Positions 30,691-63,345 of a stretch of DNA of 64,000 bases are shown piece by piece. Below the pieces are notes generated by a model. It was given only the letters and a program-made list of their open reading frames with translations. It was not told the origin of the DNA and made no database searches. The DNA is taken from IMG/VR virus record IMGVR_UViG_3300012931_000759, positions 124,001-188,000 of that record. One strand, 5' to 3'. A program made the position numbers and the translations under genes. Each line of letters begins with the position of its first letter. Positions within the stretch are counted from its first letter, which is position 1.

Positions 30691-31698
30691 ATGTCCCAGC
30701 CGATTTCGAAACGTGCCCTGAACAGGCCGCTAGCGGCCCTTGTTCATAAAATACAGCCGCTGGTCAGTGGCATGCTCATGTTCACTAAGAGGGTTGGCGG
30801 CGAGACCGAGGAGAATTTGTCCGCCCAGATGGAGACCATGCGCGGCTACCTCCTAGAGATGGGCTGCCTACTCGAAAAGCACGATTCGTTGGTCTGCCGC
30901 AGTGCCGCAGTTCCCGTCCTGGTGCGACTAGCCGATCAGCTTGACGCTATCGGCGCGCATGCGATGGCTGACGTAGCCGACGAGGCTGCCCAGCTCATCA
31001 AAACCGCCCAGGCATCCCAGGCCCCACAGCAGCAGCTCGCCCAGCAGCAACAGCAACAAACCACACTCCAGCAGCTTGCCGACAGGTTCATCAACATTCA
31101 CACCGAGATGCTCAACGCGACCCGCCTGTTCTCGAATCCGGCCACCATCCCGTCCGGTATGAAACGTCTGCTAGACGCAGCCAGGGAGATGGGTTTGGCT
31201 GCCAACGCGCTGAAACAATCCATCTCCACCACGACCACAACGACTTCTACTCCAATCCCAGCCACCACGTCCGCAGTTCCGGGGGGACCGACCACGGCTG
31301 CTGACGCCGCCAGAGAGCTTGTCGCATTGGCCAACAGGCTGGATGTCGAGGGGAACTACGTGCTCGCCGACTTGGCGGATTGCGCGGCCAAGATGGTGCT
31401 AAAGTTTTCCGACAATCGGGAGCAGGAGGAATCACCGATCAGGCCGGGTCATCTCTCTCCGCTGTCGACGCGCTATTGCCCTGATCACTGTGGCGTACAA
31501 GCTTACAGGGTAGCCGACAGGGTGTTCCAATGTCCTATAGACGGGCGCATGTACGACTACGAGGGCGGGTACGTGGATTACAGCGGACAGAGGGTTCCGG
31601 GTGGCAACATCGCCAACCAGACCCCAACAACGATGCCATACCAGCTGCCACAGCGCTTGTATGACCCGAACCAGTACGTACTGAACACGATGAATTGA
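30691..31698 (+). CDS. Hypothetical putative head protein: PISKRA N-terminus, two LAxxLDxxG tags, Q/T-rich linkers, C-terminal Cys/His domain
   Basis: Motifs visible in the translation. Confidence 0.8.
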   Translation: MSQPISKRALNRPLAALVHKIQPLVSGMLMFTKRVGGETEENLSAQMETMRGYLLEMGCLLEKHDSLVCRSAAVPVLVRLADQLDAIGAHAMADVADEAAQLIKTAQASQAPQQQLAQQQQQQTTLQQLADRFINIHTEMLNATRLFSNPATIPSGMKRLLDAAREMGLAANALKQSISTTTTTTSTPIPATTSAVPGGPTTAADAARELVALANRLDVEGNYVLADLADCAAKMVLKFSDNREQEESPIRPGHLSPLSTRYCPDHCGVQAYRVADRVFQCPIDGRMYDYEGGYVDYSGQRVPGGNIANQTPTTMPYQLPQRLYDPNQYVLNTMN

Positions 31699-31705
31699 GG
31701 AACGC

Positions 31706-32464
31706 ATGGCTTTCCCGAAAATAATGGAGCATCCGGACAAGAATCGGATCGTAAAATGGCTGCTTGAGGGCAAGGGTGTGCGCAGGGTCAGCAAGATGCT
31801 GCGCGAGATGTATCCCGACGACAAGGAGAAGCAGTTGTCGGTGCCTACGCTCCAGGATTTTAGGAAGAAGCACCTCAAGTTGGAGGGTGACGCGCTGGAG
31901 GACGTAAAGAAGGCGAAACGCCAGCATGACGGCGAGAAGACACTACAGAAGGAACACACGCAGGTTAAAAACCTGCCGACCTATAAGCAGAAGCTGAACG
32001 AAGTTGTTGATCTCCATCTCGACATCAAGAGAGGTTTGGTCGGCATGGAGAAACTGATCACAGCGCGGCTTGAGGATTTGTTCGATATGGCGGCCCGTGG
32101 CGAGGCCACGATCGACAAGGAAAAGCTGTTACAGGGCTATTTCGACCGCTATTTCATGATGATAGACAAGTGGGCCAAGTACGTGGACAAGGTGGCTGAC
32201 TTCAAGATCGAGGCAAATGTCAACGTGACGGTCATACAGGATCAGATGGCCGTCCTGAGGCAAGTTGTGTACGAGCTTCTGCGAGAGATGGACCCCGAGC
32301 TGGCCATCGGGTTCCTGGATCGGCTGAATAACCACGTGCGCACCCTGACGTACAGGCCTACCACGCCGTCAAAGGCGGCCTCGCTAGCGACCTTGCGCGA
32401 CGAAATCGCAGCGCTACCGGATGCCCAAATTATTGACGCTCCGGAGGGATACGATGCCGACTAG
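31706..32464 (+). CDS. Hypothetical helical protein with N-terminal HTH-like segment (possible terminase small subunit)
   Basis: IVKWLLEGKGVRRVSKML..LSVPTL HTH-like pattern; function inferred only from context. Confidence 0.65.
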   Translation: MAFPKIMEHPDKNRIVKWLLEGKGVRRVSKMLREMYPDDKEKQLSVPTLQDFRKKHLKLEGDALEDVKKAKRQHDGEKTLQKEHTQVKNLPTYKQKLNEVVDLHLDIKRGLVGMEKLITARLEDLFDMAARGEATIDKEKLLQGYFDRYFMMIDKWAKYVDKVADFKIEANVNVTVIQDQMAVLRQVVYELLREMDPELAIGFLDRLNNHVRTLTYRPTTPSKAASLATLRDEIAALPDAQIIDAPEGYDAD

Positions 32465-34055: not shown

Positions 34056-34058
34056 GAT

Positions 34059-34829: not shown

Positions 34830-34885
34830 GATTAATGGTGGTTAGCAATACAAATACAAATACAAAGAGAGAGAGGACATTACTG

Positions 34886-36186: not shown

Positions 36187-36195
36187 AATCGCGAG

Positions 36196-36549
36196 GTGTA
36201 TCTCATGGAGTTGACTAGCAGCGCGTTGACGGCGGCCCTTGTGGGCGTAATCGTCGTCCTGACCAAGGTGATCGAGTGGCTTATGAATCGCAGCGGGAAC
36301 GGGAAAACTAAGGCGGGCAAGGAGTTCAATGGTCACGGAGATACCCTGACGAGGGTTGAGGCAAAACTCGACATGGTCGCCAGTGGTTTACAGGAGATGA
36401 GGCAAGGTCGGGCGCTGATGGTGGAGCACATGGCCAGCGTGGCAAGTGGCCAAGAGCACATCATCGAGCGCCTCGGTGACGTGGCACGTGGGGTGGAGAG
36501 GGTCGCAGATAATGTCGCCGAACTGAGAAGCGATATCAAGCACCGGTAG
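36196..36549 (+). CDS. Small single-TM protein with coiled coil (holin-like architecture)
   Basis: N-terminal hydrophobic helix ALTAALVGVIVVLTKVIEWL, then heptad repeats. Confidence 0.6.
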   Translation: MYLMELTSSALTAALVGVIVVLTKVIEWLMNRSGNGKTKAGKEFNGHGDTLTRVEAKLDMVASGLQEMRQGRALMVEHMASVASGQEHIIERLGDVARGVERVADNVAELRSDIKHR

Positions 36550-36568
36550 AACCGACGGAGGGTACAAC

Positions 36569-38171: not shown

Positions 38172-38348
38172 ATGATAGTGCCGAACACGCGGCGCCTAAA
38201 ACGCTTCGCGGTGATATACAAGGGAAGATCTTGCGGCCCGACCACGTCGTGGCCGCAAACCATTTGGTTTGATAAGGAGGAGGAGTACGATGAGGCGGTT
38301 CGCAAGCTGAAGACGCTGGTCGTGGATCTGAATGCCAATGCCGATTAG
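38172..38348 (+). CDS. Small 58-aa hypothetical protein (below the ORF-track cutoff)
   Basis: ATG 38172 to TAG 38348 fills the gap before the terminase (MIVPNTRRLKRF...). Confidence 0.4.
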   Translation: MIVPNTRRLKRFAVIYKGRSCGPTTSWPQTIWFDKEEEYDEAVRKLKTLVVDLNANAD

Positions 38349-40182
38349 GACAATTAACACCAGCCGTTGGGCTCCGGAGAACAGCTTCGAAGAGCTGAAG
38401 GCCGAACTGATGAAAGTCGATCCGGTCTATTTCGCCGAGTCATACCTGACGCTCGACGGAAATCCGATGAAGCTGACGGGCAATGGATGGAAGTTCATCG
38501 CCGACATCTACCGCTACATCATGTCCAAGGCGGTGTCGCCCGACGGCAAACCGATCGTCATCGTCAAGGGTCGCCAGGTCGGCGCCACAACGATGGCCTC
38601 GGCGCTGGAATTACACATGGTCGCCAGTGGTGTGTTTGGGCAGGGCGGAGCCAGGCCTATCCGCGTCATGCATGCTTTCCCACAGTTGGAGCTGATGCAT
38701 GCCTTCTCCAAGGACAAGCTGGAGAAAATGGTTCGTGAGTCGGCGATGGTTCCGGATCCGGATGATCCGCGGCACCAGATGAGGCCTTTCGTCGAGACTA
38801 TGAAAGATGCCTCGCGTGAGGCTTCCGACAGCCTGACCTACAAACAGTTCAAGCACGGCAACACCCTGTGGTGTGATTCCATAGGAAATGAGGGGGTTAG
38901 GGTGCGCGGCCGTACCATCGATGCCATCTTTTTCGACGAGGCCCAGCTCATGACGAAGCAGGCGGTCGACACGGCGGTCAAGTGTACCACGCGAGCCCAG
39001 TATGGTCCACAGCCTGGCGGCATCCAGGTCTACTTCGGCACCCCGGAGCATAAGAACTCTCACTTCTACGAAATGTGGGAAAACTCCGACCAACGCCGGT
39101 ATTACCTCGGCTGCGCTGAATGCCACCGCTACTTCCTTCTATACACTCCTGGCTCCGATAAGTGGGAGAAGGACATCTGGCTATACGAGAATGTGGTGAA
39201 ATGTCCTAACTGCGGTCACGAGCAGGACAAGGTAGAAGCAATCGAGCGCGGCAAATGGCTCCCTGCCCCCGGTAAAGAGGACGCTAAGATCGTCGGTTTC
39301 CACTTCAACCAACTCTTTATTCCGGAGTTTACGAAGGAAAAGATCCTCAATGAGAGCCCGGCGTATAACCCGATGAAGAGGGAGGTGGACTGGAACAATG
39401 AGGTGCTTGGCGAGTTTCACACGGGAACCGGCCTACCAATCACCCGCGAGGAGATCTATAAAACCTGCCGGGACCCTATGCGCACGATGGCCAAGCATAT
39501 CACCAAAGACGAGCGAAAGATGGTGTACATGGGTATCGACTGGGGAGGTAAGCCGGATATCGACGACGTAAAGACCCGTGGACAGTCCTTCTCCTGCGCA
39601 GTTGTGATCTCGGTAGAACACGACGGCCGGGTGTTGATAGAGTTCGCCCAGAAGTTAAAGAAGCTAGACCTACAGTCCAAGATGCAGTTTGTCGAGGAAA
39701 TGATGCGCCTGTACAACGTGCGGATGGTCGGGGCGGACATTGGGTATGCCGAGGACATTTCGGGTGAACTGAAAGCACGCCTAGGCGACCGCTTCAAGAC
39801 AGTGCGGAACTCCGCCCAGGTTCTCAGTGGCACCAAGTACCGGGAGGACGAGTTGGAGATCGTCATTGACAAGGATAAGTGGATTGGCGATATGTTCAAT
39901 CTGCTGCGTCGCGGCGGCGTTCGTTTCCCGTGGGGAAGCTACGAGCGCGTGGCCTGGCTGGTAGACCATTGCTGCTCCATGGAGAGCAAGCAGACCATCC
40001 GCGCGGGCATGCCGCATACCATGTTTGTCAAGGGGAAAACACACAACGACGGGCTGATGGCGCTCATTTACGCCTATGTCGCATACAAGTTCGAGCAGAC
40101 GCATGGCTTCAAGGCCACGCCTGGCAATGCGGTCGCGAAGTCGGTGAAGCCGGTCCTGGCGTTCGTTCCGCGCATGAGATGA
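38332..40182 (+). CDS. terL: Terminase large subunit (lambda GpA-like, with Zn-binding cysteines)
   Basis: IVKGRQVGAT Walker A, IFFDE Walker B, GTP coupling motif, CAEC/CPNC, GFHFNQL, MGIDWG nuclease motif. Confidence 0.9.
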   Translation: MPMPIRTINTSRWAPENSFEELKAELMKVDPVYFAESYLTLDGNPMKLTGNGWKFIADIYRYIMSKAVSPDGKPIVIVKGRQVGATTMASALELHMVASGVFGQGGARPIRVMHAFPQLELMHAFSKDKLEKMVRESAMVPDPDDPRHQMRPFVETMKDASREASDSLTYKQFKHGNTLWCDSIGNEGVRVRGRTIDAIFFDEAQLMTKQAVDTAVKCTTRAQYGPQPGGIQVYFGTPEHKNSHFYEMWENSDQRRYYLGCAECHRYFLLYTPGSDKWEKDIWLYENVVKCPNCGHEQDKVEAIERGKWLPAPGKEDAKIVGFHFNQLFIPEFTKEKILNESPAYNPMKREVDWNNEVLGEFHTGTGLPITREEIYKTCRDPMRTMAKHITKDERKMVYMGIDWGGKPDIDDVKTRGQSFSCAVVISVEHDGRVLIEFAQKLKKLDLQSKMQFVEEMMRLYNVRMVGADIGYAEDISGELKARLGDRFKTVRNSAQVLSGTKYREDELEIVIDKDKWIGDMFNLLRRGGVRFPWGSYERVAWLVDHCCSMESKQTIRAGMPHTMFVKGKTHNDGLMALIYAYVAYKFEQTHGFKATPGNAVAKSVKPVLAFVPRMR

Positions 40183-40194
40183 TAAGGAGAATTC

Positions 40195-44451: not shown

Positions 44452-44454
44452 CCC

Positions 44455-44907
44455 ATGGATCGTTCGGAACTCTTGTTTAGGGACGGCTGCCGCAAATGGC
44501 ATGCCTACTTCGAGCGGTGCGCGAACGATGGTCGGATGGCCGAGATTCCGCATCTTATCAGGAAAATCGCGCAATACCTGGATGCCTGGAAGGGTGGCCT
44601 CGTGGCCGCTCATCGCAAGACGCAGGAGGCTGAAAAGTACCTCCTGGAGTGCCGTCAGAAGGAGGCCTCGATCCAGTCTCGGCTGAGGCTGCTGGGGCAG
44701 CTCGCCGCCACCATGGATAGCAGATTTGCCGAGAGGAGTCAGCAGGAGCGTTTTGTCAGGAGGGAGCGCGCGCTAGCGGCGGCCGAAACCTGGAGGCTGG
44801 TGGAGGGAAAGAAGCGGGAGGAATCCGAGCGGGAAAGGCTCGAGAGGGCTGAGAGGCACATGGCCGCACAAGAGCAGGAAGGCAGATCCGGAGGCGACAA
44901 TGAATAG
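44455..44907 (+). CDS. Hypothetical coiled-coil protein
   Basis: Fills the gap after the portal. Confidence 0.65.
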   Translation: MDRSELLFRDGCRKWHAYFERCANDGRMAEIPHLIRKIAQYLDAWKGGLVAAHRKTQEAEKYLLECRQKEASIQSRLRLLGQLAATMDSRFAERSQQERFVRRERALAAAETWRLVEGKKREESERERLERAERHMAAQEQEGRSGGDNE

Positions 44908-46081: not shown

Positions 46082-46083
46082 TT

Positions 46084-49980: not shown

Positions 49981-50025
49981 ATATCAGTTTGTGTAAATAT
50001 TTGAGATCGCTCAACATTATGGAGT

Positions 50026-53000: not shown

Positions 53001-55344
53001 CGAAATGGAGACCCACAACAGCCATGGCATCCGATTCGACCCCGAAACGACGCTGAAGGAGGGGGATCGCATTGTTGTGAAGGCCCTGCTGATGCCGCGT
53101 AACTCCTCCTGGCCTCCCAATAAGTTCGTTAGCCATATCCGGCAAGGTCTGAAGTGGGACATCGGCGATGCCAAGGTCTACTACTCGGCGCTGCGCCGCC
53201 GCCAGAAACCTAAACCCTCGGACGAGCAGGTTATGGCCTTCTGGACGAAAAAGATGCAAGAAGCCAACATGACCGAGAAACTTGAGAAGTTTTATGAGAC
53301 GGTATACGACAGGCTGCGCCACAAGGAGGACCTCTCGGCTTTCGAGATAAGGCTGTTGGAGCAGTTTGAGCAAGCCAAGGAACAGGAGGCGTCCGACACC
53401 ATGGTTTCCGAAGCCAAGGATCCCCTCGCAAAATACCAGGGCAAGCGCGAATTCGACAAGACCACGGAGCCGAAAGGTAAGGAGTCGGAGGGTGGGAACA
53501 GGTACCGCTTTGTCATCCAACTACACCATGCCAAGAAAGCGGGTGACCATTACGATTTACGCCTAGAGAACGACGAGGGCGCATTGTCGTCGTGGAGTAT
53601 CCCGAAGCACCGGCTACCCAAGGGCAAGGAGAAGTTGCTCGCTGTCAGGACCGAAGACCATCCGGTCGAATACCTGAAGTTCAAGGGCGAAATCCCGGCG
53701 GGCGAGTATGGGGTCGGCACGATGGAGATCCACGACTCGGGAACCTACGAGGAGATCGAGGCCGGCAAGACCAAGATCGTCTTCTGCTTGAAGGGAAAGA
53801 AGGAGAAGGGGGCCTACAAGTTATTCCGGGCAGGCGAGGGAAACAAATGGATGGTGATGGAACATACAGAAAATAAACAGGAAAAGAAAGAGGCAGCCTG
53901 TGGCTCGAGTGTAACTCTATTCTCCAAACGAATTGGCAGTGTTCCGTTGTCAAAGATGGCGGCGCACAGTGGTGCGATGTTGGCTCTCATGGCTCCGTCG
54001 GCCATTGCCAGGAAGATGCGCAAGGCCAAGATGGTAGAGGACGAAGATCTGTCTGATACCCTTCACATGACTCTGTTGTACCTCGGGAAAGCTGCTGACC
54101 TCAGCAAAGAGACGCTGGAAGCAGTCCGGAAGGCGGCAGAGAAGGTGTGCGAGCGGCACGACCCGCTAAAGATGGGTGTTTCGGGTGCCGGGACATTCAC
54201 TCCGGAAGAAGATGGCACTCCGGTATACGTGGTACCTAATGCGAAGGGATTGAGCGCTCTACAGGCCGACCTGGAGAATGTTATCGGCAGCATCGTCGAC
54301 CTGCCCTCTGAGCACGGCTGGGTTCCGCATATGACTGTATGCTACTGCCGCGACGGGAAACCGGAACTCCCAGACCTGACGGAGAAACTGGAGTGGACCG
54401 CTGATAAGGTGCGTCTACAGGCTGGTGACGAGAAGATCGCGGACATTCCCATTGGCCGCAGGAAAAAGGGTGGAAGCGAGCTTCCGCTGTCCAGGCGGGC
54501 TGCGCTGGAGCGGTTGCCGATAGCCGCTGATCCTGTAATGTGGACGGATGAACAGTTGGTGGAAGCCGTCCGTCGACCGGAACTGTTCGGAAACGACAAA
54601 GATCGGTATCGGGCAGCAGTCGAACAGTTGGCCAAACGCGGTCTGGTGAAAAAGGTGGAGCCAACAGACATCGGCGAATGGCGTGAGCGCGGTTGGTGGC
54701 TACTAATGTGGGCGGGGATCCCACTCGCTTTCTACAACAACGATGCTGCTGCCAGTATGGCTAAACGGCTGCTCGCAGAGGATTTCGCCAAGGACGGCAC
54801 GCAGCCTATTGCTGCGCGTAAGTTTGATCCGATCCATTCCCGTCTGCGTTGGCAACTCGACGAGGTCATGGATCTGGGCCCGGCCGAGGACTACGAGGAG
54901 GCTGATCACCGGCGCGGTAGGGCAGGAACGGCCGTGGATGAACTGGTTACGCATCCTATGTACGCAAAACGGCGCAGGGAATTCGCCGAGAAGGCATTGA
55001 ACATCGCCAAGGCTCCCGCTGGTTTCAGACCGTTCAAAGAGTCGGTTCCCTCAGGTGCGCGACCAACCGAAACTAACGCTGACGCAGCTGAGGCTCGCAT
55101 CACGGACATGCGGTTCGGTAACACCCTGCCGGAGTTTACTGGACCGCTGGTGGATTCCCAGGAGGCTGCGAAGGACGCCGGTGACGAACTGGTCGAGGAC
55201 ACCGCCAAGAGACTTGCCAAGCGGCTGGAGGCCGAGCGGGCCGGTCTAGATCCTGAAAAACTGGCGGACGACGATGCGCTGGAACTAGCCCTGATCGAGC
55301 CGGACGAGGTTCCGCTCTCGAAGCGGACGGAAACATACCAATAA
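50026..55344 (+). CDS. Mosaic protein: DJ-1/PfpI + multi-zinc-finger domain (paralogue of 10351..12372) + LigD 3'-phosphoesterase + 2H phosphoesterase + unknown domain
   Basis: AMICHAP; FVIQLHHA..HYDLRLE..SWSIPK..AVRTEDHP..Y..F.GEIP.GEYG.G; LHMTL and PHMTV. Confidence 0.85.
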   Translation: MVLMVSLRRRILMLVAPKGFFEPEYSASRAVFADRGIDVAVATAGKSAVSAQGTTIRVDLDVADADAKDFDALFVVGGKGMIEFSDDKAAKRILRKFVRVGKPVAMICHAPLLAAKAKVAAGRQMTGWPEIRPDMVASGAKWTGMPVERDGDLFTAVGPEDAESLADILVRRMDGAPTLSEAMLDDNAAMRKLARLWRAAARLDKPMTDEEAERWLTEFERRDEGEEEPPSEPTTPKPVLAPAPKSVPALAAKPKPEPEFTPDPERRDQITHKPKNEWNIVVELRPPRTDGGWPELPETPPVGFPFPAEALKDSPSIRALFQKPETWRALKEIAANPNKSGTIQSYLVPTLVLVIGKAWWEINKRRKQLGNAPFGLFSSDEYKTIQDANVPMEETQIGRAFIALINWQVTKILQFYLATGKIENARLDGYIYDALNKHMVNDAGKRHGFEPKRQPACAYCRSKRVIETTPPFLSQIGTHTVQERNLTRSRPLFKCPTCEDLIETKEQELRLKEQGVRNAEESLRDIAKNVRNTKDNLTKDPDSAELKQRLVNYEAMLASYRPQVEELAKERNTLKGEIQNRRNMIGVPYSHLSCINEACPGAAIPLTFVDWDNSFWKTPAGDVARRDLASFYHIEKSPEGQKAEDAPQESVQPTSERAGKKPPPWMWHIPFRCPFDGLVFTPHEAFGKGRVGEDGTRLGGLFVNPPRATRWWKPMSLEQQRMPDDEGQKQRIEEIRSLTGIETTTDSPDFLRSQEMKQENAWLADRLREDILRQRENFMKERGTLEGHREVKLRRTMFDALLEWAYLHPIHLVAFYSARSQATQKPQTHVPVGTEPVVDGKSGEVKEHLDEKNIKMSPKQAERIISAIIQVWFEKMLAEKDGLTILKGRPGKGRSGKLTGQGNYLAIKEVDGVEPDGFFVTTVQRALDGQLEALCNLRTTSPKTRGAGYYPAPWMALVQGIWDYDGPAERMGISMPLVEGQKLVAGKRSHLHEMETHNSHGIRFDPETTLKEGDRIVVKALLMPRNSSWPPNKFVSHIRQGLKWDIGDAKVYYSALRRRQKPKPSDEQVMAFWTKKMQEANMTEKLEKFYETVYDRLRHKEDLSAFEIRLLEQFEQAKEQEASDTMVSEAKDPLAKYQGKREFDKTTEPKGKESEGGNRYRFVIQLHHAKKAGDHYDLRLENDEGALSSWSIPKHRLPKGKEKLLAVRTEDHPVEYLKFKGEIPAGEYGVGTMEIHDSGTYEEIEAGKTKIVFCLKGKKEKGAYKLFRAGEGNKWMVMEHTENKQEKKEAACGSSVTLFSKRIGSVPLSKMAAHSGAMLALMAPSAIARKMRKAKMVEDEDLSDTLHMTLLYLGKAADLSKETLEAVRKAAEKVCERHDPLKMGVSGAGTFTPEEDGTPVYVVPNAKGLSALQADLENVIGSIVDLPSEHGWVPHMTVCYCRDGKPELPDLTEKLEWTADKVRLQAGDEKIADIPIGRRKKGGSELPLSRRAALERLPIAADPVMWTDEQLVEAVRRPELFGNDKDRYRAAVEQLAKRGLVKKVEPTDIGEWRERGWWLLMWAGIPLAFYNNDAAASMAKRLLAEDFAKDGTQPIAARKFDPIHSRLRWQLDEVMDLGPAEDYEEADHRRGRAGTAVDELVTHPMYAKRRREFAEKALNIAKAPAGFRPFKESVPSGARPTETNADAAEARITDMRFGNTLPEFTGPLVDSQEAAKDAGDELVEDTAKRLAKRLEAERAGLDPEKLADDDALELALIEPDEVPLSKRTETYQ

Positions 55345-55353
55345 TCCCGTATC
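55336..55353 (+). promoter_or_regulatory. Variant of the candidate promoter motif (TACCAAT-N7-TATC)
   Basis: Same spacing as 7202 and 27891; 17 nt upstream of ATG 55371. Confidence 0.3.
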
Positions 55354-55370
55354 CGTAGGGGTGATCCAAC

Positions 55371-55664
55371 ATGGGCATGGCTGAGTACATCGCGAAGAAA
55401 TTTATGGGCGAAGAAATCTGGGTCGACTTGGACGACGAGGCGGAGACTGTCGTATACAGTGAAGTATGGGCAAAAAATCGCGAAATAATTCGAGGCATTG
55501 TACGCACAGTTGAAGAAGGAGTGCTAGAATTCGAGATTCCCACCGTTGGTGTGATCTATATTAACTGTGACTGTATCAAAGTGCTCTGGAAACCAGGAAT
55601 TGATTGGCGAAAGGCAACAAAAGGATCTTTCACCAATCGTCTCCTTAGTGCCAACAGGCGATAA
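55371..55664 (+). CDS. Small beta-rich protein (possible Sm/LSm-like fold)
   Basis: IRGIVRTVEEGVLEF..VIYINCDCI strand pattern. Confidence 0.6.
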   Translation: MGMAEYIAKKFMGEEIWVDLDDEAETVVYSEVWAKNREIIRGIVRTVEEGVLEFEIPTVGVIYINCDCIKVLWKPGIDWRKATKGSFTNRLLSANRR

Positions 55665-55667
55665 CAA

Positions 55668-56864
55668 ATGTCAAAAAAGAAGGCAACTCCCGATAACAAT
55701 CTACAATCTGTCAATCCTGAATTGGCGAAAGAGTGGCATCCGACCAAGAATGGGAGTCTGAAGCCGACAGAGGTCTTGCCGTATAGCCAAAAGAAAGTCT
55801 GGTGGAGTTGTGTCAAAGGGCACGAATGGTCTGCCGAGATAGGAAGCCGTTCACAAGGGTACAAATGTCCATATTGTTGGGGAAGATTTGCTACGCCCGA
55901 GAACAATCTTGCGATTATACATCCGGAAGTGGCCACAGAATGGCATCCGATGAAAAATGGCACCTTGCGCCCAATCGATGTGACACCATTGTCGAGCAAA
56001 AGGGTGTGGTGGAAATGTACCAATGGGCATGAAAGATGCTCAACGGTAAAAAGTCGTGTGCGCGCTAATGGATGTCCGTGTAAAAAAGGCAGGTTGTTTT
56101 CCCAAGAACACAGTCTCGCCGCACTTTTCCCCAAAGTAGCGAAACAATGGCATCCAACCAAGAATGGCCGCTTGGCGCCCTGCGATGTTGGCCCCAGATC
56201 AAACAAAATTGTATGGTGGATATGTGAACAAGGACATGAATGGAAAACATTCGTATATACGCGGACAGATGGATGGGGGTGTAGGATTTGTAGTGGGCGA
56301 GTGGCAACTTCCGAACACAATCTAGAAATCGCATTTTCTGACATAGCATTACAGTGGTGTTTAGTAAAAAATGGTTCTCTGAAACCTTGCGATGTAACCC
56401 CGCATTCAGGCACAAAAGTGTGGTGGAAATGTATAAACGGGCATGAATGGGAAGCGGCTATCTGTAACAGGACAAGCACCAACAAGACAGGATGTCCATA
56501 TTGTTCCACACGCGTCTCCAAGGGTTGTGTGAAATGGCTTGACAGCATTGGGTTGCCGAACGATAGCCAGCATCGAGAAGTGATATTGAAAGCGGGCAAA
56601 CACTGGTACTGTGTTGATGGGTTTGATAAAGATATAAACACAGTATATGAATATCTTGGAGACTTTTGGCACGGCAATCCTAATAGGTTTAAACCAACTG
56701 GTGTAAATCCACAATGTAAAGAAACATACGGGTCATTGTTGTTAGGAACAGTAGACAAGTTGAATAATATTTACAACGGCGGCTTCAAAATTATATATAA
56801 GTGGGAAAGTGCCGCCAATCATCAGGTATACAAGCCTGGAGTGATAAGCGCATCGGCGCATTGA
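55668..56864 (+). mobile_element. Putative homing endonuclease: four zinc-ribbon (DUF4379-like) repeats plus C-terminal nuclease
   Basis: 4x L...P..A.EWHP.KNG..VWW.C..GHEW..C..C; C-terminal VDG..VYEYLGDFWHG; AT-rich. Confidence 0.75.
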
Positions 56865-56873
56865 GGCGCATCC

Positions 56874-57581
56874 ATGGAGAAGCAGGCTAACATAGTCAAG
56901 ATCGCCTTCATCCGCAAAGTGAAAGGTAAGGGATGGTGCGTTTTTGCCCACCGCAAAACCAAAAGCGGAAAACGCCAGAATTTCGGATGCTACAAATCGA
57001 AGGCGGCCGCGAAAAAACGCCTTGGTCAGATCTATTTCTTCAAGGGTCGCGGAGCTTTGGATGGCATGATCGGCATTGCGGATGACTTGGATCGCAGGGG
57101 ACTTCTCCATTTCGCGGACGCCCTGATGGATAGTCTGGAGCAGATCGTGGCTGCCAGCCTAGGCGAGATATCTGAGCGCCCGGTCTCCGTGACCATCGGC
57201 AAGATCGCCTCACTGCTGGAGAAAAAGGGCGAGGCAGCGCTCGCAGAGCGGCTGGACAGTCTTCTGCCAGCCGTGCTGGATGTGGAGTGTGGCGGAGTTG
57301 ACTGCCCCGACTGCCCGGACATGGTGGTCGAGGCCGATCTCGGCCGCTGCGGCGGCATCACTAGGCAGGTGTCCGCCGACAAGCTGTATGCGATGGCGGC
57401 CCGCTGCCGCCAGATGTACCGCGAGGGCATGATAGACGAGAACAGCTTCGAATACAGGAAGTTCCGTGAGCTGCGCTATATGCTGCGCACTGGTTTCCTG
57501 TTCCCGCCCCCTGAGGGACAGGGCGTCCCAAAGGACGCCGCGAACTGGTGGGACCATTTCGAGAAGGAGGCGGGCGAATGA
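56874..57581 (+). CDS. Hypothetical putative head protein with basic N-terminal module and two helical tags
   Basis: EKQA/VKIA; IRK..GWCVF..NFGCY..AKKRL.QI.FFK; IADDLDRRG, IASLLEKKG. Confidence 0.8.
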   Translation: MEKQANIVKIAFIRKVKGKGWCVFAHRKTKSGKRQNFGCYKSKAAAKKRLGQIYFFKGRGALDGMIGIADDLDRRGLLHFADALMDSLEQIVAASLGEISERPVSVTIGKIASLLEKKGEAALAERLDSLLPAVLDVECGGVDCPDCPDMVVEADLGRCGGITRQVSADKLYAMAARCRQMYREGMIDENSFEYRKFRELRYMLRTGFLFPPPEGQGVPKDAANWWDHFEKEAGE

Positions 57582-58153
57582 GCGGACGACTTTTGAGGCT
57601 GGCCAAGGCCATCGCCGTGATCGATGTCAAGGAGCCGGAGGGCGGCTGCTTTCCCGGTGCCGAGAAGGTTTTAGAAAAGCAGAAAGGTCCCGGCGGCATG
57701 TGGCGCGAGGACGAGTTGCTGGACTATGGGCGCGCCAAAGGCACCGTGCCGGACAAGAAGCCGAAAGATCTCGACCTGAGGGCCGAGGACCTCGCCAACC
57801 GGCTCGAGGAGGCTGTGGCTGCCATTGGCGACTGCGTGGCAATCCTGAAGGAATTGGGAATGGACGAGGGGAAGGCTGGGGACAAAATCCTCTCCATCGT
57901 CCGGGACGAGACGCTCGGACCGGAGAGGATTCCGGGCGGGTTCTCGGAGGGCAAACCGGACTCCGAGTTCGACCCCGACCAGCTGGAGAAGGGCATCAAG
58001 GTCGAATTGGAGCATACGGGCAACATCGGGGTCGCAAAAGAGGTCTCCAAAGACCATCTTTGCGAAAACAAGCGTTATTACGATTACTTAGAAGAAATGG
58101 AAGAAAAAGCCGAAAAGAAGGGCGATTCGTGTAGGTTGGCGGATCAAACATGA
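57578..58153 (+). CDS. Hypothetical protein with C-terminal DUF5661-like domain
   Basis: FDPDQLEKGIKVELEHT..AKE..KDHL.E..RYY; AAGGAGG and ATGA overlap at 57578. Confidence 0.7.
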   Translation: MSGRLLRLAKAIAVIDVKEPEGGCFPGAEKVLEKQKGPGGMWREDELLDYGRAKGTVPDKKPKDLDLRAEDLANRLEEAVAAIGDCVAILKELGMDEGKAGDKILSIVRDETLGPERIPGGFSEGKPDSEFDPDQLEKGIKVELEHTGNIGVAKEVSKDHLCENKRYYDYLEEMEEKAEKKGDSCRLADQT

Positions 58154-59016
58154 ATCTGTGTCAATGTGGCTGCGGCGCCCTCGTTGAGAAGCGTTACAAA
58201 AAAGGTCATGGGCGGCGTGGCAAAACAAATACTCCAGAACACAATCAGAAAATAGGTCTGGCCAATTCTGGTAGGAAACACACGCGAGTTGGTACAACCA
58301 GCGAATACAAAGCTGTTCCTGATTCTTTCCTCCAAAACCAACAGGTTGGTCGTCGTCTGTCCGAAGAAACAAAGGCGAAAATGAGTCGCATCGCCAAAGA
58401 AAAGGGTTTTGGAAAATGGATGGTCGGCAGAAAACGATCTGAGGAAAGTATCAAAAAAGGAGCAGACAAGGTAAAAGGACACGAAGTGTCCTCCGATACG
58501 CGCAAAAAGATCTCCGATGCCAACGGTGGTCAGAACAACGGTATGTTTGGGAAACGTCACACAGAGGAAGCGAAAACGAAAATTGCTGAAGCCGCTGCTG
58601 CTATGTGGGAAAACCCGGAAATCAGAGCACAACTGCTTGAGGCGTTCAATGCTCCAGAACATATCGAAATGCTGCGCCAGAGAAGGGCCAATATGGTGTT
58701 GCCCGTCAAGGACACAACCATTGAGGTGATCGTGCGCGGATTCTTGGACGCTTTGGGTGTTCTGTATCAACAGCACAAGATGATCAAGGACATAGAGCAC
58801 AGATATCAATGCGATTTTTATGTAGAGGCTCATGGGCTGGTCATAGAATGCGATGGCGATTACTGGCATCAGTATCCACATGGCCGCGACATAGACCGCG
58901 CGCGAACCTTTGAGATGGAACAGCAGGGATATAAAGTATTGCGACTGTGGGAGCACTCCATTCGCAAAATGTCCTGCGATGATTTTCGTCTGGTATTAGA
59001 AAAGGTGGTCAGATGA
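58150..59016 (+). mobile_element. Putative homing endonuclease: NUMOD3 repeats + Vsr/DUF559-like nuclease
   Basis: CQCGCG, SEETKAKMS-type repeats, CDFY..IECDGDYWH, GYKVLRLWE. Confidence 0.8.
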
Positions 59017-60137
59017 ACCTGCGCCAGAGGTTATTGGTCCTGCGCCCCGCCATGGCGGCGGCCGCCCAGAAGGTGGTCGACGAGTGGCAGCTGGACGAGG
59101 AGGGGCTTGATCCGGAGCTGGGCGCGGGCGGGATCTGCGACCGCGTGGCCGACGCCATCACCGACACGCTGTACTCCCATCTCGGCGATGTCGAGGTGGC
59201 GCTTGGCGCTCCGGAGGGCGAGGACCACCAGTGGGTTGTTGTGAGTGACGGGAAGGAGGCCTTTGTGGTCGACATCCCGCCAGGCGCGTACGAAACCGGC
59301 GGCGGCTACGCCTGGACAAAGATCGAAGGCGCCCGGATCGAACCAAGTGATGTGTTCGTAGGCCCGATCGACCTAGAACTAGCGCAAGACCTTCTCAAGG
59401 AGGGTGGACGGATGCATAGACTCGTTGTCCTGGCCGAGGCGCTCGAGGCGCTCGGCGAAGCGAACAGTGCCGCGCTCGCGCGCGTGCTGGCGGTCCCCGA
59501 ACTCGTCAGCGAGGCACAGGGCTGGGCTGATCGGTTTTTTAAGGCGAATCCCGAACTACTGGACAGGGCTGAGCAATTCGCTGAGGCCAAGGGTATCTCA
59601 GTCGGGCAATATCTCGGCCATCTTGAGCAGCTTCCGGAGGATATCGGCCGCAAAAAGGTCCATCAGGATCTCGGTTATGTCGGAATGGGCGCGGCGTGGT
59701 CCCCGACCGGTAAACCGACCGCAAAACCGGAGCCTAAGCCGGAGAAGCCGGAGCCGAAACTACAGCCGGAGACCGAACTCCGGTGGCCGTTCCCGCCGCC
59801 GAATGTCCTCCAGGACAGAAAGGCCTTCATTGCCGCCGCCCTCGGATGGGCGATGGGCGAGGGCAGGGACCTCTACGGGCGCATGTACGGTTCGCAGGGG
59901 CTGCGCGACACGGGCAGGAAGGGGGAGGTGGGGGCTGCGCGCGCCTATCTGCGATACCTCATGAAGGATGTGGCGCCGCGCCTGGCCGCCACCCTGCAGG
60001 CCAAATGGAAGGAGGCCTCGACCAAGGGCGACACGGAGGCGCAGCGCACGCTGAGAGCCTGGTGGTCGTCGCTGTCGGACGTGTGGGAGCTGATCCAGGA
60101 TATGGTCGGCAACATCAACGAATATTCTATGGAATAG
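59013..60137 (+). CDS. Two-module hypothetical protein; N-terminal module has a possible papain/transglutaminase-like C-H-D triad
   Basis: GGICD..HQWVV..VVDI; second module starts at an internal AAGGAGG..ATG (59412). Confidence 0.7.
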   Translation: MNLRQRLLVLRPAMAAAAQKVVDEWQLDEEGLDPELGAGGICDRVADAITDTLYSHLGDVEVALGAPEGEDHQWVVVSDGKEAFVVDIPPGAYETGGGYAWTKIEGARIEPSDVFVGPIDLELAQDLLKEGGRMHRLVVLAEALEALGEANSAALARVLAVPELVSEAQGWADRFFKANPELLDRAEQFAEAKGISVGQYLGHLEQLPEDIGRKKVHQDLGYVGMGAAWSPTGKPTAKPEPKPEKPEPKLQPETELRWPFPPPNVLQDRKAFIAAALGWAMGEGRDLYGRMYGSQGLRDTGRKGEVGAARAYLRYLMKDVAPRLAATLQAKWKEASTKGDTEAQRTLRAWWSSLSDVWELIQDMVGNINEYSME

Positions 60138-60140
60138 TTA

Positions 60141-60815
60141 ATGGTTTCTGGGATATACCTCATAACAAACACCATAAATGGCCATCGGTATGTGGGCAGC
60201 AGCGCCGATGTTGACATGCGCTGGAGCCAGCACAAATGGAATGCCGGAAAGAACAAACACATAAACCCTCATTTTCAGCATGCCTGGAACAAATACGGGC
60301 AACAAGCATTCGCGTTCGAGGTGTTGGAAATTGTACCGGATCCTGCTGATTTGGTGACCATAGAGCAGTACTACCTGGATTGGCTGGAACCGGAGTACAA
60401 CATTTGTCCTGTGGCGGGTAGTTGCCTTGGTCGGGCGTGTTCCAAACAGCATCGGGCAAGAATCAGCGCGTCGCACAAGGGCAAAGTGCTGTCGGAGGAA
60501 CACAAGACCAAGATCAGCGCGTCTCATCAAGGCAAGCCCCTGTCGCAATCGCATCGGGATCACATAGGTGCCGCACATCTTGGACGACACCTTTCCGAGG
60601 AGACCAGAGCGAAACTCAGGGCCGCAAACATGGGAAAATGTCCTTCTGAAGCGACATTGGCGGCAGTACGCAAAGCAAATAAAGGAAGGCCATTGTCCGA
60701 GGAACATCGTGCCAAATTGAGTGCGGCACACAAGGGCAAGGTGTTTTCTGACGAACACCGCGCCAGGTTGAGCGAAGCGGCCAAACGCAGATATGGTCGC
60801 TTGTCGGAGGGCTAG
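60141..60815 (+). mobile_element. Free-standing GIY-YIG homing endonuclease with NUMOD3 repeats
   Basis: SGIYLITNTINGHRYVGSS; repeated SEEHRAKLSAAHKGK. Confidence 0.88.
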
Positions 60816-60818
60816 GCC

Positions 60819-61202
60819 ATGGCGACTCCACCGCTCTCCAAGAGGAGCAATTCCACACCGCTGCTTCCCATCTCGAAGCGGGCGCAGGATCCCGTGCGCC
60901 GCACGGCTGAGTCCATCCTGAAGATCATCACCTTCATCCTTTTCCGCGTGGCGCCGAAAGACAAGACACGATACCTACAGCGTATTAGAGGAAAAATACT
61001 AAGGATTCCAACAGGGCAAGTGAGTCTGAAAAAGTTGCCGCAAACAGCGGCCATTGGACAAGCTATCAGTTTGACCAAAAACATCTTGTCCGGTTTGAAC
61101 CCCTTCTTTGTCAAAAGAGTGGTGGACGAACTGGCGAACCTTATGCTTCTACAGGTGCCCGTTCGCCAGACTCTACCAATCCAGCGACCTAGGGTCCAAT
61201 GA
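60819..61202 (+). CDS. Small basic hypothetical protein with tandem PLSKRS/PISKRA N-terminal motifs
   Basis: MATPPLSKRSNSTPLLPISKRA; GGAGG upstream. Confidence 0.75.
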   Translation: MATPPLSKRSNSTPLLPISKRAQDPVRRTAESILKIITFILFRVAPKDKTRYLQRIRGKILRIPTGQVSLKKLPQTAAIGQAISLTKNILSGLNPFFVKRVVDELANLMLLQVPVRQTLPIQRPRVQ

Positions 61203-61855
61203 TGAAAACCTGTACGCGCTGTAACCAACCAAAATCCAAAGACGAATTCTACGCAGATCATAGGGTTTACGACGGACGACGAAGTGTTTGTAAACAGTGT
61301 CAAGATACTGTGAATAATCAATATCGCACTCAGCATAAGAATGAGGTGGAGGCACAGCGGGCCGCCTATCGCGAAGCGCACAAAAACGAGAACCAGGCGT
61401 ATCAGAAGCAATATCGTGCCATCCACAGACAAGAACTATCTGAGAAAAAACGGGCATACTACAATCAGTCCGATGTGAGGGATGCGAAACAACTCCATGA
61501 CAGGGCGTACCATGCTAGTAACAAAGAAAGTCGCGCGGAGACCATGAAGCGTTGGCGGCAAACTGACGCCGGACAGGCCTCCAGAGCAAATTCGTGTGCC
61601 AAACGTCGCTCCAGGGTTGGAGACAACATCATCTCAACAACCGAGTGGCAACTCATCATGTCCAATGCCAACTGGCATTGCGTTTATTGTGACATCGCGC
61701 TCACCCCAGAAAACCGTAGTCTGGATCATGTGGTGCCTCTATCGAAAAACGGATCACATTGCGTAGACAATCTAGTGGCATGTTGTAGAACATGTAATTC
61801 CAGTAAAAAAGACAAACCTGTCCTGGAATTTGTCTCCAACAGAGGTCAGATATGA
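61199..61855 (+). mobile_element. Free-standing HNH endonuclease
   Basis: CTRC..CKQC N-terminus; CVYC..DHVVPLS..G.H..NLV.CC..CN..K. Confidence 0.88.
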
Positions 61856-63345
61856 TTCCCCTCAGCAAACGCGCGATCCAGGTCGTCATCGAGCCGCTTG
61901 ATCCTGCGGTCCAGCAGGCTGTGACGCGCATCAATGCGCGCGACCCTGCTCTTCTTGCGCGTGTCCACAAGATTGTGGTACACCCAGGTGGCGGAGCCGA
62001 GTTGGGTCATGTTCAATCCGGAAAAGGACATGATCCGCAGGAGATCCACCTTTTCAAGGGGCGCATAGAGCAGATGGTTCGTCAGCAGACCAGCGCCACC
62101 GGCGTGAAGCCAACCCCGACGGATTTCGCCCAGGCTTTGGAACAGGCAATAGTGGAAGTAATCGGCCATGAGGCCGGGCACATCGGGCCGGAGCGGCCGA
62201 TTGTGCCGGGAGCGCAGCCTTTCCTTGGGGAACCGGAGGCTGAGACGAAGGCCAAGGAGACCGTCCGGAGGATCTATCCCGGAGCCGTCGCGCACGCGGC
62301 CATCGAACTGGACGACATCAGACGGAAATTCATGCCAGATGCCCCCATGGGCGAGCCGGATCTGGCCTTTGTGGCAAAGGTTGCCGCCGGAAACGGCGCT
62401 GGCGCCCTGCGCGACGGGTTGAGGATCTTGCGCCACGGCAGCGTGCCTGTGGCTTTGGCTATGGGACAGGCCTGCGTGTTCAACAGCCAGGTCGCGCGTC
62501 GCACGGATGTGGCCAGGAAGTTGGGCTTCCTAGTGAGCCTGTTTGGGGCGCTGCCGAACTCCAACGATTTCGCGATGGCGCTTGCCGCCTGCCAAACGGA
62601 CAACGGCCTCGAGCCGACAGGGAAGCTCGACCGTCCAACCATAGCGCACCTGCGCGCCCGCATGGCGCCCTCCGAGGAGTTCCCGCGCAACTTCGGCATG
62701 GTGGCCGAGGGACTGTATCGCGGAAGGCAGCCCGACAGCATCGGGCAGCTCGCGGCCCTGCGCGACAGGCTGGGCGTCCGCCGCGTTGTGACGCTGAACG
62801 ACGACGGCCCACCGATCGCCGACTGGTGCCGCCAGCTGGGCCTGGGGCACCTCCACGCGATGCTGTCGTCCGGCGCTCCCCAGGAGCCCGGATGGCAGGT
62901 TTTCGGCCCCGAGCTGTCGGATTTCCTGCTTGAGACCCCCACATTCGTCCATTGCCGCCATGGAGCCGACCGGACGGGCGGCGTCGTGGCGCGGTGCCGC
63001 ACCGAGATGGGTTGGCCCTGCGACCTGGCATACGCCGAAGCCAAAGCCTTCGGTTTCAAGGACCGTTTCCCCGACATGGTCGACCGGTTTACCGACGCCT
63101 GCGGACACGACCCGCACGGGCACCGGCACCCGCCCATCGACACCGCCCTGATCCGCCGCATCATGGGGGCGGAGCTTGCCGCCAACGCCCCGCGTCCTTC
63201 GGTCGAGCAGGATCTGCTCGAGCCCACCCCGTTTGACCTCCACTACACCACCGACAACAACAGCTACGAGAGTGGGATCGATACGATCCTGTCGCCATAT
63301 TCCATCATGTCTATTCCGACAGGTTTTCCGGGGGCGGGGAGATGA
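61852..63345 (+). CDS. Mosaic protein: HExxH module + peptidoglycan-binding-like helix pair + tyrosine/dual-specificity phosphatase
   Basis: PLSKRA N-terminus; IGHEAGH; CQTDNGLEPTGKLD..T; LYRG.QP, FVHCRHGADRTG (CX5R). Confidence 0.8.
   Translation: MIPLSKRAIQVVIEPLDPAVQQAVTRINARDPALLARVHKIVVHPGGGAELGHVQSGKGHDPQEIHLFKGRIEQMVRQQTSATGVKPTPTDFAQALEQAIVEVIGHEAGHIGPERPIVPGAQPFLGEPEAETKAKETVRRIYPGAVAHAAIELDDIRRKFMPDAPMGEPDLAFVAKVAAGNGAGALRDGLRILRHGSVPVALAMGQACVFNSQVARRTDVARKLGFLVSLFGALPNSNDFAMALAACQTDNGLEPTGKLDRPTIAHLRARMAPSEEFPRNFGMVAEGLYRGRQPDSIGQLAALRDRLGVRRVVTLNDDGPPIADWCRQLGLGHLHAMLSSGAPQEPGWQVFGPELSDFLLETPTFVHCRHGADRTGGVVARCRTEMGWPCDLAYAEAKAFGFKDRFPDMVDRFTDACGHDPHGHRHPPIDTALIRRIMGAELAANAPRPSVEQDLLEPTPFDLHYTTDNNSYESGIDTILSPYSIMSIPTGFPGAGR

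Follow-up and report, generated by a model that had tools for sequence, protein, structure and literature searches.

We analyzed a window of 64,000 nucleotides from a viral metagenomic record (IMG/VR record IMGVR_UViG_3300012931_000759, positions 124,001 to 188,000) that encodes part of the head-morphogenesis block of an uncultivated huge phage. Pfam and PHROGs searches place the large terminase (38332–40182, +) and an intein-bearing portal (40195–44451, +) immediately upstream of two giant polyvalent proteins, the first of which lies two genes after the portal gene. Including the flanking sequence, gene order is terminase, portal, two small genes, polyproteins, cargo genes, protease-scaffold fusion, and capsid protein; an HK97-type protease domain, fused to a scaffold, is encoded about 2.3 kb past the window end. 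Polyvalent protein 1 (46084–49980, +; 1,298 aa) contains an ATP-dependent DNA ligase (aa 26–207; Pfam DNA_ligase_A_M, E = 1.4e-31), a lytic-transglycosylase-like signature (ES...GPTQ...Y, aa 388–413) inferred by reading the sequence only, an unknown module, and a module with a weak PrimPol-like signal. Polyvalent protein 2 (50026–55344, +; 1,772 aa) contains a DJ-1/PfpI domain with an intact Cys-His (aa 9–169, AMICHAP), a conserved, largely helical, Cys-cluster region of about 850 aa, a LigD 3'-phosphoesterase (PE, aa 1,165–1,268), a 2H phosphoesterase (aa 1,341–1,464), and a C-terminal helical module (about aa 1,493–1,755). The two genes are in the same frame and are separated by two stops (49978–49980 and 50002–50004).

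These proteins, and others encoded in the window, carry copies of a short peptide, all in frame in long + strand ORFs. PISKRA (30700–30717) occupies residues 4–9 of a 335-aa protein (30691–31698); the N-terminal 76 aa of this protein, motif included, are absent from the orthologue in a 441-kb relative, so this copy is lineage-specific. PSLSRRA (46093–46113) occupies residues 4–10 of polyvalent protein 1, whose orthologues keep a looser N-terminal version (PISRHA, LSLRA, ISIRA, or LSIRMA). In the same protein, PLSKLA (48757–48774, aa 892–897) lies 6 residues before a conserved module; the site reads MLSKRA, LISKRA, TLSKHA, or LLSKRA in relatives, and tblastn homology breakpoints fall at aa 889–902. 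Polyvalent protein 2 carries PLSKMA (53944–53961, aa 1,307–1,312), 4 residues before the first strand of the 2H domain, PLSRRA (54484–54501, aa 1,487–1,492), in the linker between 2H and the C-terminal module, and PLSKRT (55312–55329, from aa 1,763), which ends 4 residues before the stop. The module that follows PLSRRA is preceded by LPFSKRA, after a ferritin-like domain, in the 441-kb relative. PLSKRT is part of a conserved C-terminal tail, PLSxRxxxYQ-stop, which recurs after different last modules in the sequences P0050, P0052, P0070, and P0076.

Farther downstream, a 127-aa protein (60819–61202, +) has tandem N-terminal copies, PLSKRS (60831–60848, from aa 5) and PISKRA (60867–60884, from aa 17), and a 497-aa protein with a PTP/DSP-like phosphatase domain (61852–63345, +) starts with MIPLSKRA (motif at 61858–61875, aa 3–8). 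Between them lies an HNH homing-endonuclease gene (61199–61855, +). In five homologues (P0007, P0011, P0043, P0044, and P0046) the 127-aa module is instead fused upstream of the phosphatase module, with a motif at the junction. About 35 of 47 homologues of the phosphatase gene, at 35%–83% identity, carry the motif within their first 10 residues, at a variable distance (0–14 aa) from the domain.

The initial annotation had listed these nine copies as marking N-termini and domain junctions, with one at a C-terminus, and each of them was confirmed. Within-protein shuffles of the 54 window proteins gave 0.21 strict matches, compared with 9 observed, and 0 of 2,000 shuffles reached 9. The strict pattern misses PSLSRRA because of its inserted S, and one of the 9 matches, PISKIS in the portal (41887), is a conserved part of the folded portal that reads PISKLN or PISKIN in relatives and is therefore unrelated. 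Codon usage differs between copies, as had been stated (Ser is TCG, TCC, TCA, or AGC; Arg is CGT, CGC, CGG, or AGG). Selection is therefore on the peptide. Pfam boundaries show that the copies at aa 1,307 and 1,487 bracket the 2H domain, as had also been claimed. In contrast, the ASCH label given to the module after 48757 was not confirmed: Pfam and PDB sequence searches gave only a weak LigD PrimPol/PriS-like signal at aa 1,107–1,176.

It had been set beforehand that motifs falling inside folded domains would refute the cleavage reading, and the motif passes this test. In an AlphaFold model of aa 1,130–1,772 (mean pLDDT 84.5), the only segments with pLDDT below 50 are fragment residues 155–182, 353–369, and 628–643, and these hold the three motif copies (fragment residues 178–183, at the end of the first segment, 358–363, and 634–639). 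Foldseek confirmed the flanking folds as LigD-PE and 2H.

The motif is conserved across a clade of metagenomic huge phages with GC contents from 29% to 57%, with the general seven-residue consensus F/hydrophobic-x-[LI]-S-K-R-A; Pro at −1 is found in the subclade of the window. In 11 related loci we counted 33 [LIF]SKRA in 73.7 k coding residues, compared with 3 in 328.6 k residues of other frames, a density about 49-fold higher in coding frames. As a control, 85 cellular LigD proteins lack junction copies and match only through an unrelated ligase core motif inside the fold.

Relatives keep the motif when modules are shuffled, and a motif junction in one phage can be a gene boundary in another. 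The two big genes of the window form one continuous ORF of 2,728–3,476 aa in relatives, with 2–4 strict copies at junctions. The motif brackets PE in one related locus, L026, and both PE and a C39 peptidase in P0061. The start of PE is marked by the motif in L026 and in another related locus, L024 (FYISKRAKDPLSTY), by a new gene start (MTDPLAKY) in the 441-kb relative, and by a decayed copy (MVSEAKDPL, 53401–53427) in the window. An alignment of 8 orthologues revealed a second decayed copy (PAKMERKAM, 47068–47094) just after the ligase domain, where relatives have F-x-LSKRA or PISKRA. In another relative, three adjacent N-terminally tagged cargo genes sit in the same slot.

The interpretation offered in the initial annotation, that the motif is a polyprotein cleavage signal, is only partly supported. 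The positions in linkers and at N-termini and the protein-level selection agree with it, but copies at the extreme N-terminus of stand-alone genes are among the best conserved of all, which a pure role in cutting domains apart does not require. Tandem copies exist, and a 5-residue leaving peptide with a conserved YQ end is odd for a mere cleavage site. Several junction copies have decayed in the window phage, so cutting at each junction is not essential, and long stretches of the polyproteins (PrimPol-like, DJ-1, and the central 850 aa) have no copy. The S78-like head protease-scaffold fusion (1,326 aa), its two orthologues, and the 341-aa major capsid protein carry no copy. The DJ-1/PfpI-like domain, the one peptidase-family domain common to all the polyproteins examined, has lost its Cys-His dyad in L026, whose polyprotein still has four clear copies, three LSKRA and one ISKKA. 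Cleavage remains plausible but unproven, and no protease can be assigned.

Our best, though tentative, explanation is that the motif is a short linear recognition peptide that tags a swappable set of modules (ATP-dependent ligase, LigD 3'-phosphoesterase, 2H phosphoesterase, PTP-like phosphatase, CCA-adding enzyme, PrimPol-like, TopoIB, ferritin-like, and C39 peptidase) encoded between the portal and the protease-scaffold and capsid genes of this one clade. In this view, an as yet unidentified, clade-specific, phage-encoded reader, possibly a dibasic-specific protease, would bind the peptide during head assembly. Terminal copies would act as an address label that gets each enzyme into the particle, whereas internal copies, whose form (hydrophobic P4/P6, dibasic P2-P1, small P1') fits an endoprotease cutting after K-R, would let the giant polyproteins be split into separate enzymes. 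Our data establish that the motif is real, selected at the peptide level, conserved across the clade, confined to these proteins, and located in disordered junctions and termini, and that junctions and gene boundaries are interchangeable between phages. Binding by a reader and cleavage are inferred, as is virion packaging, which is deduced from gene position and the precedent of polyvalent proteins; in this clade, with no cultured relative and no proteome, it rests on gene order only.

The phage and plasmid polyvalent proteins (Iyer, Burroughs, Anand, de Souza, Aravind 2017, PMC5512222) are likewise multi-enzyme polypeptides encoded next to the portal-terminase packaging genes, the slot where packaged polyvalent/MuF-type proteins sit. 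They carry 2H, peptidoglycan-targeting, and peptidase modules, undergo extensive domain shuffling, and are proposed to be packaged, injected, and possibly proteolytically processed. However, no conserved inter-domain motif is described there, and the text has no occurrence of "linker," DJ-1, PfpI, or LigD; no such motif has been described. No MuF or MPTase anchor domain was detected in the window proteins, and the module set here is a DNA/RNA end-repair kit (ligase, PE, 2H, phosphatase, CCA enzyme). The closest analogy for the proposed dual role is the phage T4 capsid-targeting sequence, processed by gp21, together with A-x-E propeptide processing in the giant phages SPN3US and phiKZ, which pack many ejection proteins (PMC10052503). 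There too a short N-terminal peptide shared by several non-structural head proteins serves as an address and ends in a protease site. In those phages, however, the same cleavage motif also occurs in capsid, scaffold, portal, and protease and is x-x-Glu, whereas the peptide described here is basic (S-K-R-A), is absent from the clade's protease-scaffold fusion and capsid protein, and occurs also at internal junctions, in tandem, and at C-termini.

Of the alternatives, the one that survives best, though we consider it unlikely, is a pure docking or cargo-loading peptide that is never cleaved and binds a pocket on a head component (capsid interior, scaffold, portal, or an adaptor), with several copies per polyprotein giving avidity. 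The conservation of terminal copies, the tandem copies at N- and C-termini, the YQ tail after different last modules, and the failure to find a matching protease agree with this, and linkers and termini are the default location of docking motifs. Encapsulin cargo-loading peptides, short conserved terminal peptides that direct diverse enzymes, including ferritin-like proteins, into an HK97-fold shell, offer a parallel, and a ferritin-like protein carries the tag in the 441-kb relative. However, one label per chain would suffice, yet AT-rich relatives keep 2–4 near-perfect internal copies at junctions, which have no encapsulin counterpart. Junctions are interchangeable with gene boundaries, and the dibasic-plus-small-residue form looks like a protease site. 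The sequence is not known to resemble encapsulin loading peptides, and the shell here is a real tailed-phage capsid with a separate scaffold, to which binding is only hypothesized.

Classical polyprotein processing in the cytoplasm, in which the conserved DJ-1/PfpI-type Cys-His domain or another embedded peptidase would cut at each motif to release free enzymes, with no link to packaging, is less likely. A DJ-1/PfpI domain with an intact ICH(A/G)P nucleophile elbow is present in 5 of 6 polyproteins examined, other peptidase modules occur sporadically (an HExxH domain in the 441-kb relative and the C39 peptidase in P0061), and polyvalent proteins are predicted to autoprocess (PMC5512222). The parallel with junction sites of eukaryotic RNA-virus polyproteins, such as flavivirus NS2B-NS3 dibasic sites, lies in giant ORFs with several enzymes and a conserved site with dibasic P2-P1 and a small P1' in flexible junctions. 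However, L026 has Asn-Asn in place of Cys-His, no embedded protease is both universal and catalytically conserved, the C39 module is itself bracketed by motifs like any other cargo, and many DJ-1/PfpI members are deglycases or glyoxalases rather than proteases. Nor does this model explain the conserved copies 1–6 residues from the start of stand-alone genes. Moreover, these are DNA phages, in which cleavage is so far only inferred.

Similarly unlikely is a canonical head-maturation site cut by the S78-like prohead protease, as T4 gp21 or phiKZ gp175 cut their shared motif in all head proteins, although the protease is encoded nearby and short N-terminal propeptides ending in the protease motif are known for T4 internal proteins (reference in PMC10052503). 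Apart from lacking the motif, the scaffold carries its own conserved doubled AYxQG motif, found nowhere else, and the capsid protein aligns with its family profile from residue 6 and has no delta domain. Still less likely is a co-translational chaperone site or a Ser modification site. The phage encodes a trigger-factor homologue (12384–13700), the motif usually lies 0–14 residues upstream of the next fold, and its aromatic-plus-basic composition resembles reported trigger-factor binding preferences. However, five near-invariant consecutive residues imply a specific pocket rather than promiscuous chaperone binding, C-terminal copies cannot act co-translationally, and the motif is confined to head-module cargo and absent from the other large multidomain proteins of the window. 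Finally, chance, low-complexity composition, or a DNA-level repeat or regulatory element, favored by nothing beyond the short length of the motif, is refuted by the shuffles, the excess in coding frames, the variation of synonymous codons, and the conservation from GC 29% to 57%.

The DNA examined here, at bases 124001-188000 of a 340-kb IMG/VR viral contig, has a GC content of 57%, and all of its genes lie on the + strand. The first 28 kb hold replication and repair genes (FtsK-like, PrimPol, SbcCD, a Cas4-like nuclease and DnaE-type Pol III alpha), together with a trigger-factor homologue (12384-13700, Trigger_N and Trigger_C domains), which is of interest because the phage makes proteins of 1,300-1,800 aa, and up to 3,476 aa in relatives. 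A UDP-glucose/GDP-mannose dehydrogenase gene in the same part (24971-27799) is interrupted by an intein with a LAGLIDADG domain (aa about 343-775). The motif-bearing proteins that concern us are encoded in the head-morphogenesis block. The large terminase gene (38332-40182) is followed by a portal gene (40195-44451, 1418 aa) and by two small unknown genes. The portal carries two large insertions with Hint and LAGLIDADG hits; relatives align only to aa 1-153, 544-726 and 1094-1346, so the rest (about 390 and 367 aa) look like two inteins, of which some relatives have one, both or neither. Next come a 1298-aa protein (46084-49980) and a 1772-aa protein (50026-55344), and then a run of small genes interleaved with four homing-endonuclease genes (55668-56864, 58150-59016, 60141-60815 and 61199-61855). 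With a fifth such gene in the contig sequence fetched beyond the window end (locus L020, 11638-12303), five free-standing homing-endonuclease genes of the HNH and GIY-YIG types are packed into about 10 kb of this cargo region. The same flanking sequence encodes a 1326-aa fusion of an HK97/S78-type head-maturation protease domain with a long charged scaffold-like region (L020 12281-16261, beginning about 1.6 kb past the window end), and further on a 341-aa major capsid protein (phrog_2522, E 3e-76; locus L036, 16947-17972). The capsid protein is 53% identical to gp27 of Bacillus phage G, whose first 50 kb (its head module) show no tagged proteins. No GenBank phage is close: none has DNA similarity to window positions 40000-60000, terminase identity is at most 25%, and no homologues were found for the 497-aa phosphatase protein or for the central polyprotein region.

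We first checked the motif itself. The observation made in the initial annotation holds: each of the nine copies it listed is present at its coordinate and in frame. The strict pattern occurs 9 times in the 54 window proteins compared with 0.21 expected from within-protein shuffles, and none of 2000 shuffles reached 9. One of these nine matches, PISKIS in the portal at 41887, is a conserved folded segment that does not fit the motif in relatives and was rejected; the true set is therefore the nine annotated copies, counting PSLSRRA, which has an inserted Ser. Codons differ between copies. Pfam places the LigD 3'-phosphoesterase (PE) at aa 1165-1268 and the 2H domain at aa 1341-1464 of the 1772-aa protein, so that the copies at aa 1307 and 1487 bracket 2H, as had been claimed. 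In contrast, the ASCH label proposed for the module after 48757 could not be reproduced; only a weak PrimPol/PriS-like signal appears further downstream.

To find out how widespread the motif is, we searched with the terminase and with a ligase-domain profile, which recovered about 30 related loci from contigs of up to 441 kb, spanning GC 29-57%. In these loci the motif is sharper than in the window and reads F (or another hydrophobic residue)-x-[L/I]-S-K-R-A; Pro at -1 is a peculiarity of the window's GC-rich subclade. In 11 loci, [LIF]SKRA occurs 33 times in 73.7 k residues of long + strand ORFs, compared with 3 times in 328.6 k residues of all other frames; since the counts in relatives use a regular expression, degenerate copies are missed. 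In most relatives the two large window genes are one ORF of 2,728-3,476 aa. The order of modules is ligase, a module with a lytic-transglycosylase-like signature, an unknown module, a PrimPol-like module, DJ-1/PfpI, a conserved region of about 850 aa, PE, and sometimes 2H. The motif sits after the ligase, after the second module, before the PrimPol-like module, and before and after PE, with 2-4 strict copies in each ORF.

The initial annotation had named motifs lying inside folded domains as the outcome that would count against its reading. We built an AlphaFold model of aa 1130-1772 of the 1772-aa protein from a 54-sequence alignment (mean pLDDT 84.5). The model has folded PE, 2H and C-terminal helical modules and exactly three stretches with pLDDT below 50, at fragment residues 155-182, 353-369 and 628-643; the three motif copies are at fragment residues 178-183, 358-363 and 634-639. 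Foldseek confirmed PE (TM 0.92 to an archaeal LigD-PE) and 2H (LigT/CPDase). The copy at aa 892 of the 1298-aa protein coincides with tblastn homology breakpoints at aa 889-902 and precedes a conserved module by 6 residues in all orthologues. The reading thus passes this test.

When modules move, the motif stays at the seam. The C-terminal module of the 1772-aa protein follows 2H in the window, but in the 441-kb relative it follows a ferritin-like domain and is preceded by IPLSSRQA...LPFSKRA, and in other relatives it sits in an 867-876-aa protein upstream of the terminase and is followed by F-x-LSKRA. The 1298-aa and 1772-aa genes are in the same frame and are separated only by two stops (49978-49980 and 50002-50004) and a GTG/ATG restart, within 49978-50037; elsewhere this boundary is a continuous ORF, with ISKKA or ALSRRE at or near the seam, so the window shows a recent fission of the polyprotein gene. 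The start of PE is F-Y-ISKRA-KDPL in the related locus L024, a new start codon (M-TDPL) in the 441-kb relative and in several database proteins, and a decayed V-S-E-A-KDPL in the window. The 127-aa protein and the 497-aa phosphatase protein are fused, with a motif at the junction, in five database homologues, whereas in the window the HNH homing-endonuclease gene at 61199-61855 lies between them. In the database protein P0061, a C39 peptidase domain (aa 443-581) is bracketed by copies at 435 and 609, and PE (aa 187-290) is followed by a copy at 309. As a control, 85 cellular LigD proteins have no junction copies; they match only through a ligase core motif, G[IV][IV]SKRAD, inside the fold. This match and a motif-like FVISKRG in the Bacillus phage G capsid protein were set aside as chance or unrelated matches inside folds.

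Other features suggest that the motif is more than a mark for cutting. N-terminal copies occur in four window proteins. Among 47 homologues of the phosphatase protein (35-83% identity), about 35 begin with the motif 1-6 residues after Met, and the spacer to the first conserved strand of the domain varies from 0 to 14 residues; the motif is therefore a separately selected element that is retained when the protein is a stand-alone gene. In another relative (L042), three consecutive genes, encoding a 116-aa protein, an 801-aa CCA-adding enzyme with four copies, and a phosphatase, are all N-terminally tagged, and the CCA enzyme also ends with a copy 5 residues before its C terminus. These genes lie in the slot between the conserved small genes and the protease-scaffold gene. 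Tandem copies 6-12 residues apart occur at N and C termini, and a C-terminal tail, PLSxRxxxYQ-stop, recurs after different last modules. The N-terminal copy on the 335-aa protein at 30691 is lineage-specific, so tags can be gained. 

We next looked for the protein that may read the motif. The protease-scaffold fusion and its two orthologues at 53-55% identity (L038 9983-13447 and L039 1163-4840) have no copy. Their scaffold-like region of about 1,000 aa, rich in charged residues, instead contains two copies of a conserved AYxQG(G/T)xEP motif that occurs nowhere else in the loci scanned and is a candidate for the real cleavage site of this protease. The capsid protein has neither a delta domain nor a copy. 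In T4, phiKZ and SPN3US the protease motif is shared by capsid, scaffold, portal and internal proteins (PMC10052503), and hence the canonical model does not fit well. The embedded DJ-1/PfpI domain has the Cys-His nucleophile elbow of the PfpI/PH1704/YhbO group and is present in all the polyproteins examined. However, in one AT-rich relative only (L026, polyprotein 9743-18295) the dyad is replaced by Asn-Asn, while four clear motif copies persist; the domain is therefore retained there for a non-catalytic reason. Other peptidase modules are sporadic: C39, and a domain of about 320 aa with an HExxH (HELTH) metallopeptidase-like motif, which is an extra N-terminal domain of the orthologue of the 1772-aa protein in the 441-kb relative (L001 13774-14748) and is absent from the window. 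Searches for a reader or protease among the conserved unknown genes of the block gave no informative matches: ESM Atlas for 44900-46081 (a poor model) and 56874-57581; PDB sequence searches for 56874-57581, 59013-60137 and 47104-48756; a profile of the central 850-aa region against PDB; and an AlphaFold model of that region (pLDDT 62, mostly helices), for which Foldseek gave no match at E<=0.001. A Tat signal (S-R-R-x-F-L-K), a sliding-clamp-binding motif and an OmpT or host-protease site were considered and set aside, since there is no hydrophobic h-region, the composition is wrong, and strict conservation across phages of GC 29-57% argues, by inference, for a phage-encoded rather than a host reader.

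The two large proteins conform to the description of phage polyvalent proteins (PMC5512222), the closest framework, in combining unrelated catalytic domains in one polypeptide (ligase in the 1298-aa protein; DJ-1/PfpI, PE and 2H in the 1772-aa protein) and in being encoded next to packaging genes, with the terminase and portal genes directly upstream and the protease-scaffold and capsid protein genes downstream. That paper describes no such junction motif. A literature search for LSKRA returned only irrelevant hits, a jumbo-phage review makes no mention of polyproteins, propeptides or capsid targeting, and we found no description of the motif anywhere in the searchable literature. Taken together, the polyprotein and its relatives (L024, L026 and the further related locus L027) amount to a nucleic-acid end-repair kit in the head gene block: the window polyprotein contains all three modules of bacterial LigD (ligase, PE and a weak PrimPol-like hit) as well as 2H and DJ-1/PfpI, and relatives add TopoIB, ASCH, a CCA-adding enzyme, ferritin-like and C39 peptidase modules.

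What the data establish, over the about 84 kb of the 340-kb genome examined, is a selected linear motif that tags enzyme modules of polyvalent proteins in the head gene block; packaging of these proteins in the virion, which rests on gene order only, there being no cultured relative and no proteome, as well as binding by a phage-encoded reader and cleavage at the motif, are inferred. The interpretation of the motif as a polyprotein cleavage signal is partly supported. Internal copies in flexible junctions, the equivalence of junctions and gene boundaries, and the dibasic/small-residue form favor proteolytic separation, whereas conserved terminal and tandem copies and the lack of a matching protease favor an address or docking role. 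The T4 capsid-targeting sequence, like the motif here a short peptide shared by the N termini of several proteins, which in T4 are head-internal, shows that one peptide can do both. We therefore tentatively favor a dual recognition-tag model, though with less than even confidence. Pure docking without cleavage is the strongest rival, possible but less likely. Cytoplasmic autoprocessing is unlikely, as no embedded protease is both universal and catalytically intact among the polyproteins examined, and the canonical prohead-protease site is about as doubtful, because the protease-scaffold fusion, its two orthologues and the capsid protein all lack the motif. Some other kind of reader appears less likely still. 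A DNA-level repeat or regulatory element is rejected, because codons differ and other frames are not enriched.

A more far-reaching possibility, which we consider unlikely but not excluded, is that a bona fide tailed phage lineage uses an encapsulin-like, sequence-defined cargo-loading tag (hydrophobic-x-LSKRA). In this view, any enzyme carrying the tag, whether as a stand-alone gene or as a module of a 3,000-aa polyprotein, would be loaded into the capsid and injected, giving the phage a plug-and-play slot for pre-made DNA/RNA-repair and counter-defence enzymes, and the tag may double as the site where a dedicated protease separates the modules inside the head. Terminal tags do occur on diverse enzymes, and the capsid gene lies roughly 17 kb downstream of the last tagged gene in the same module, but the consensus is unlike that of known encapsulin loading peptides, and loading by binding to the shell would be by analogy alone. 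A capsid cargo tag of this kind would link phage heads functionally to encapsulins, and polyprotein processing at a defined junction motif would be unusual for tailed phages. If the peptide is an address and/or processing tag, it gives a sequence-only way to list the injected enzyme arsenal of a whole clade of uncultivated huge phages, explains how the modules are shuffled, fused and split, including by homing endonucleases, without loss of function, and offers a seven-residue handle that could be tested for loading foreign proteins into large capsids. The tagged set (ligase, 3'-phosphoesterase, 2',3'-cyclic phosphodiesterase-type 2H, phosphatase, CCA-adding enzyme and a PrimPol-like module) is a near-complete end-healing and sealing kit, which suggests a pre-packed answer to host nucleases that cut tRNA or incoming DNA.

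A second, unexplained recurrent motif is present in untagged or partly tagged head-block proteins: the 335-aa (30691-31698) and 235-aa (56874-57581) proteins, and their orthologues, share a repeated [LI]-A-D-x-L-D-x-x-G-x-x-x-x-A-D element. Finally, many internal copies of the LSKRA-type motif (for example L024 17843, L026 17432 and window 54460-54501) are preceded, 4-8 residues upstream, by a basic cluster (KKKR, RRKK), and the recognized element may therefore be bipartite.
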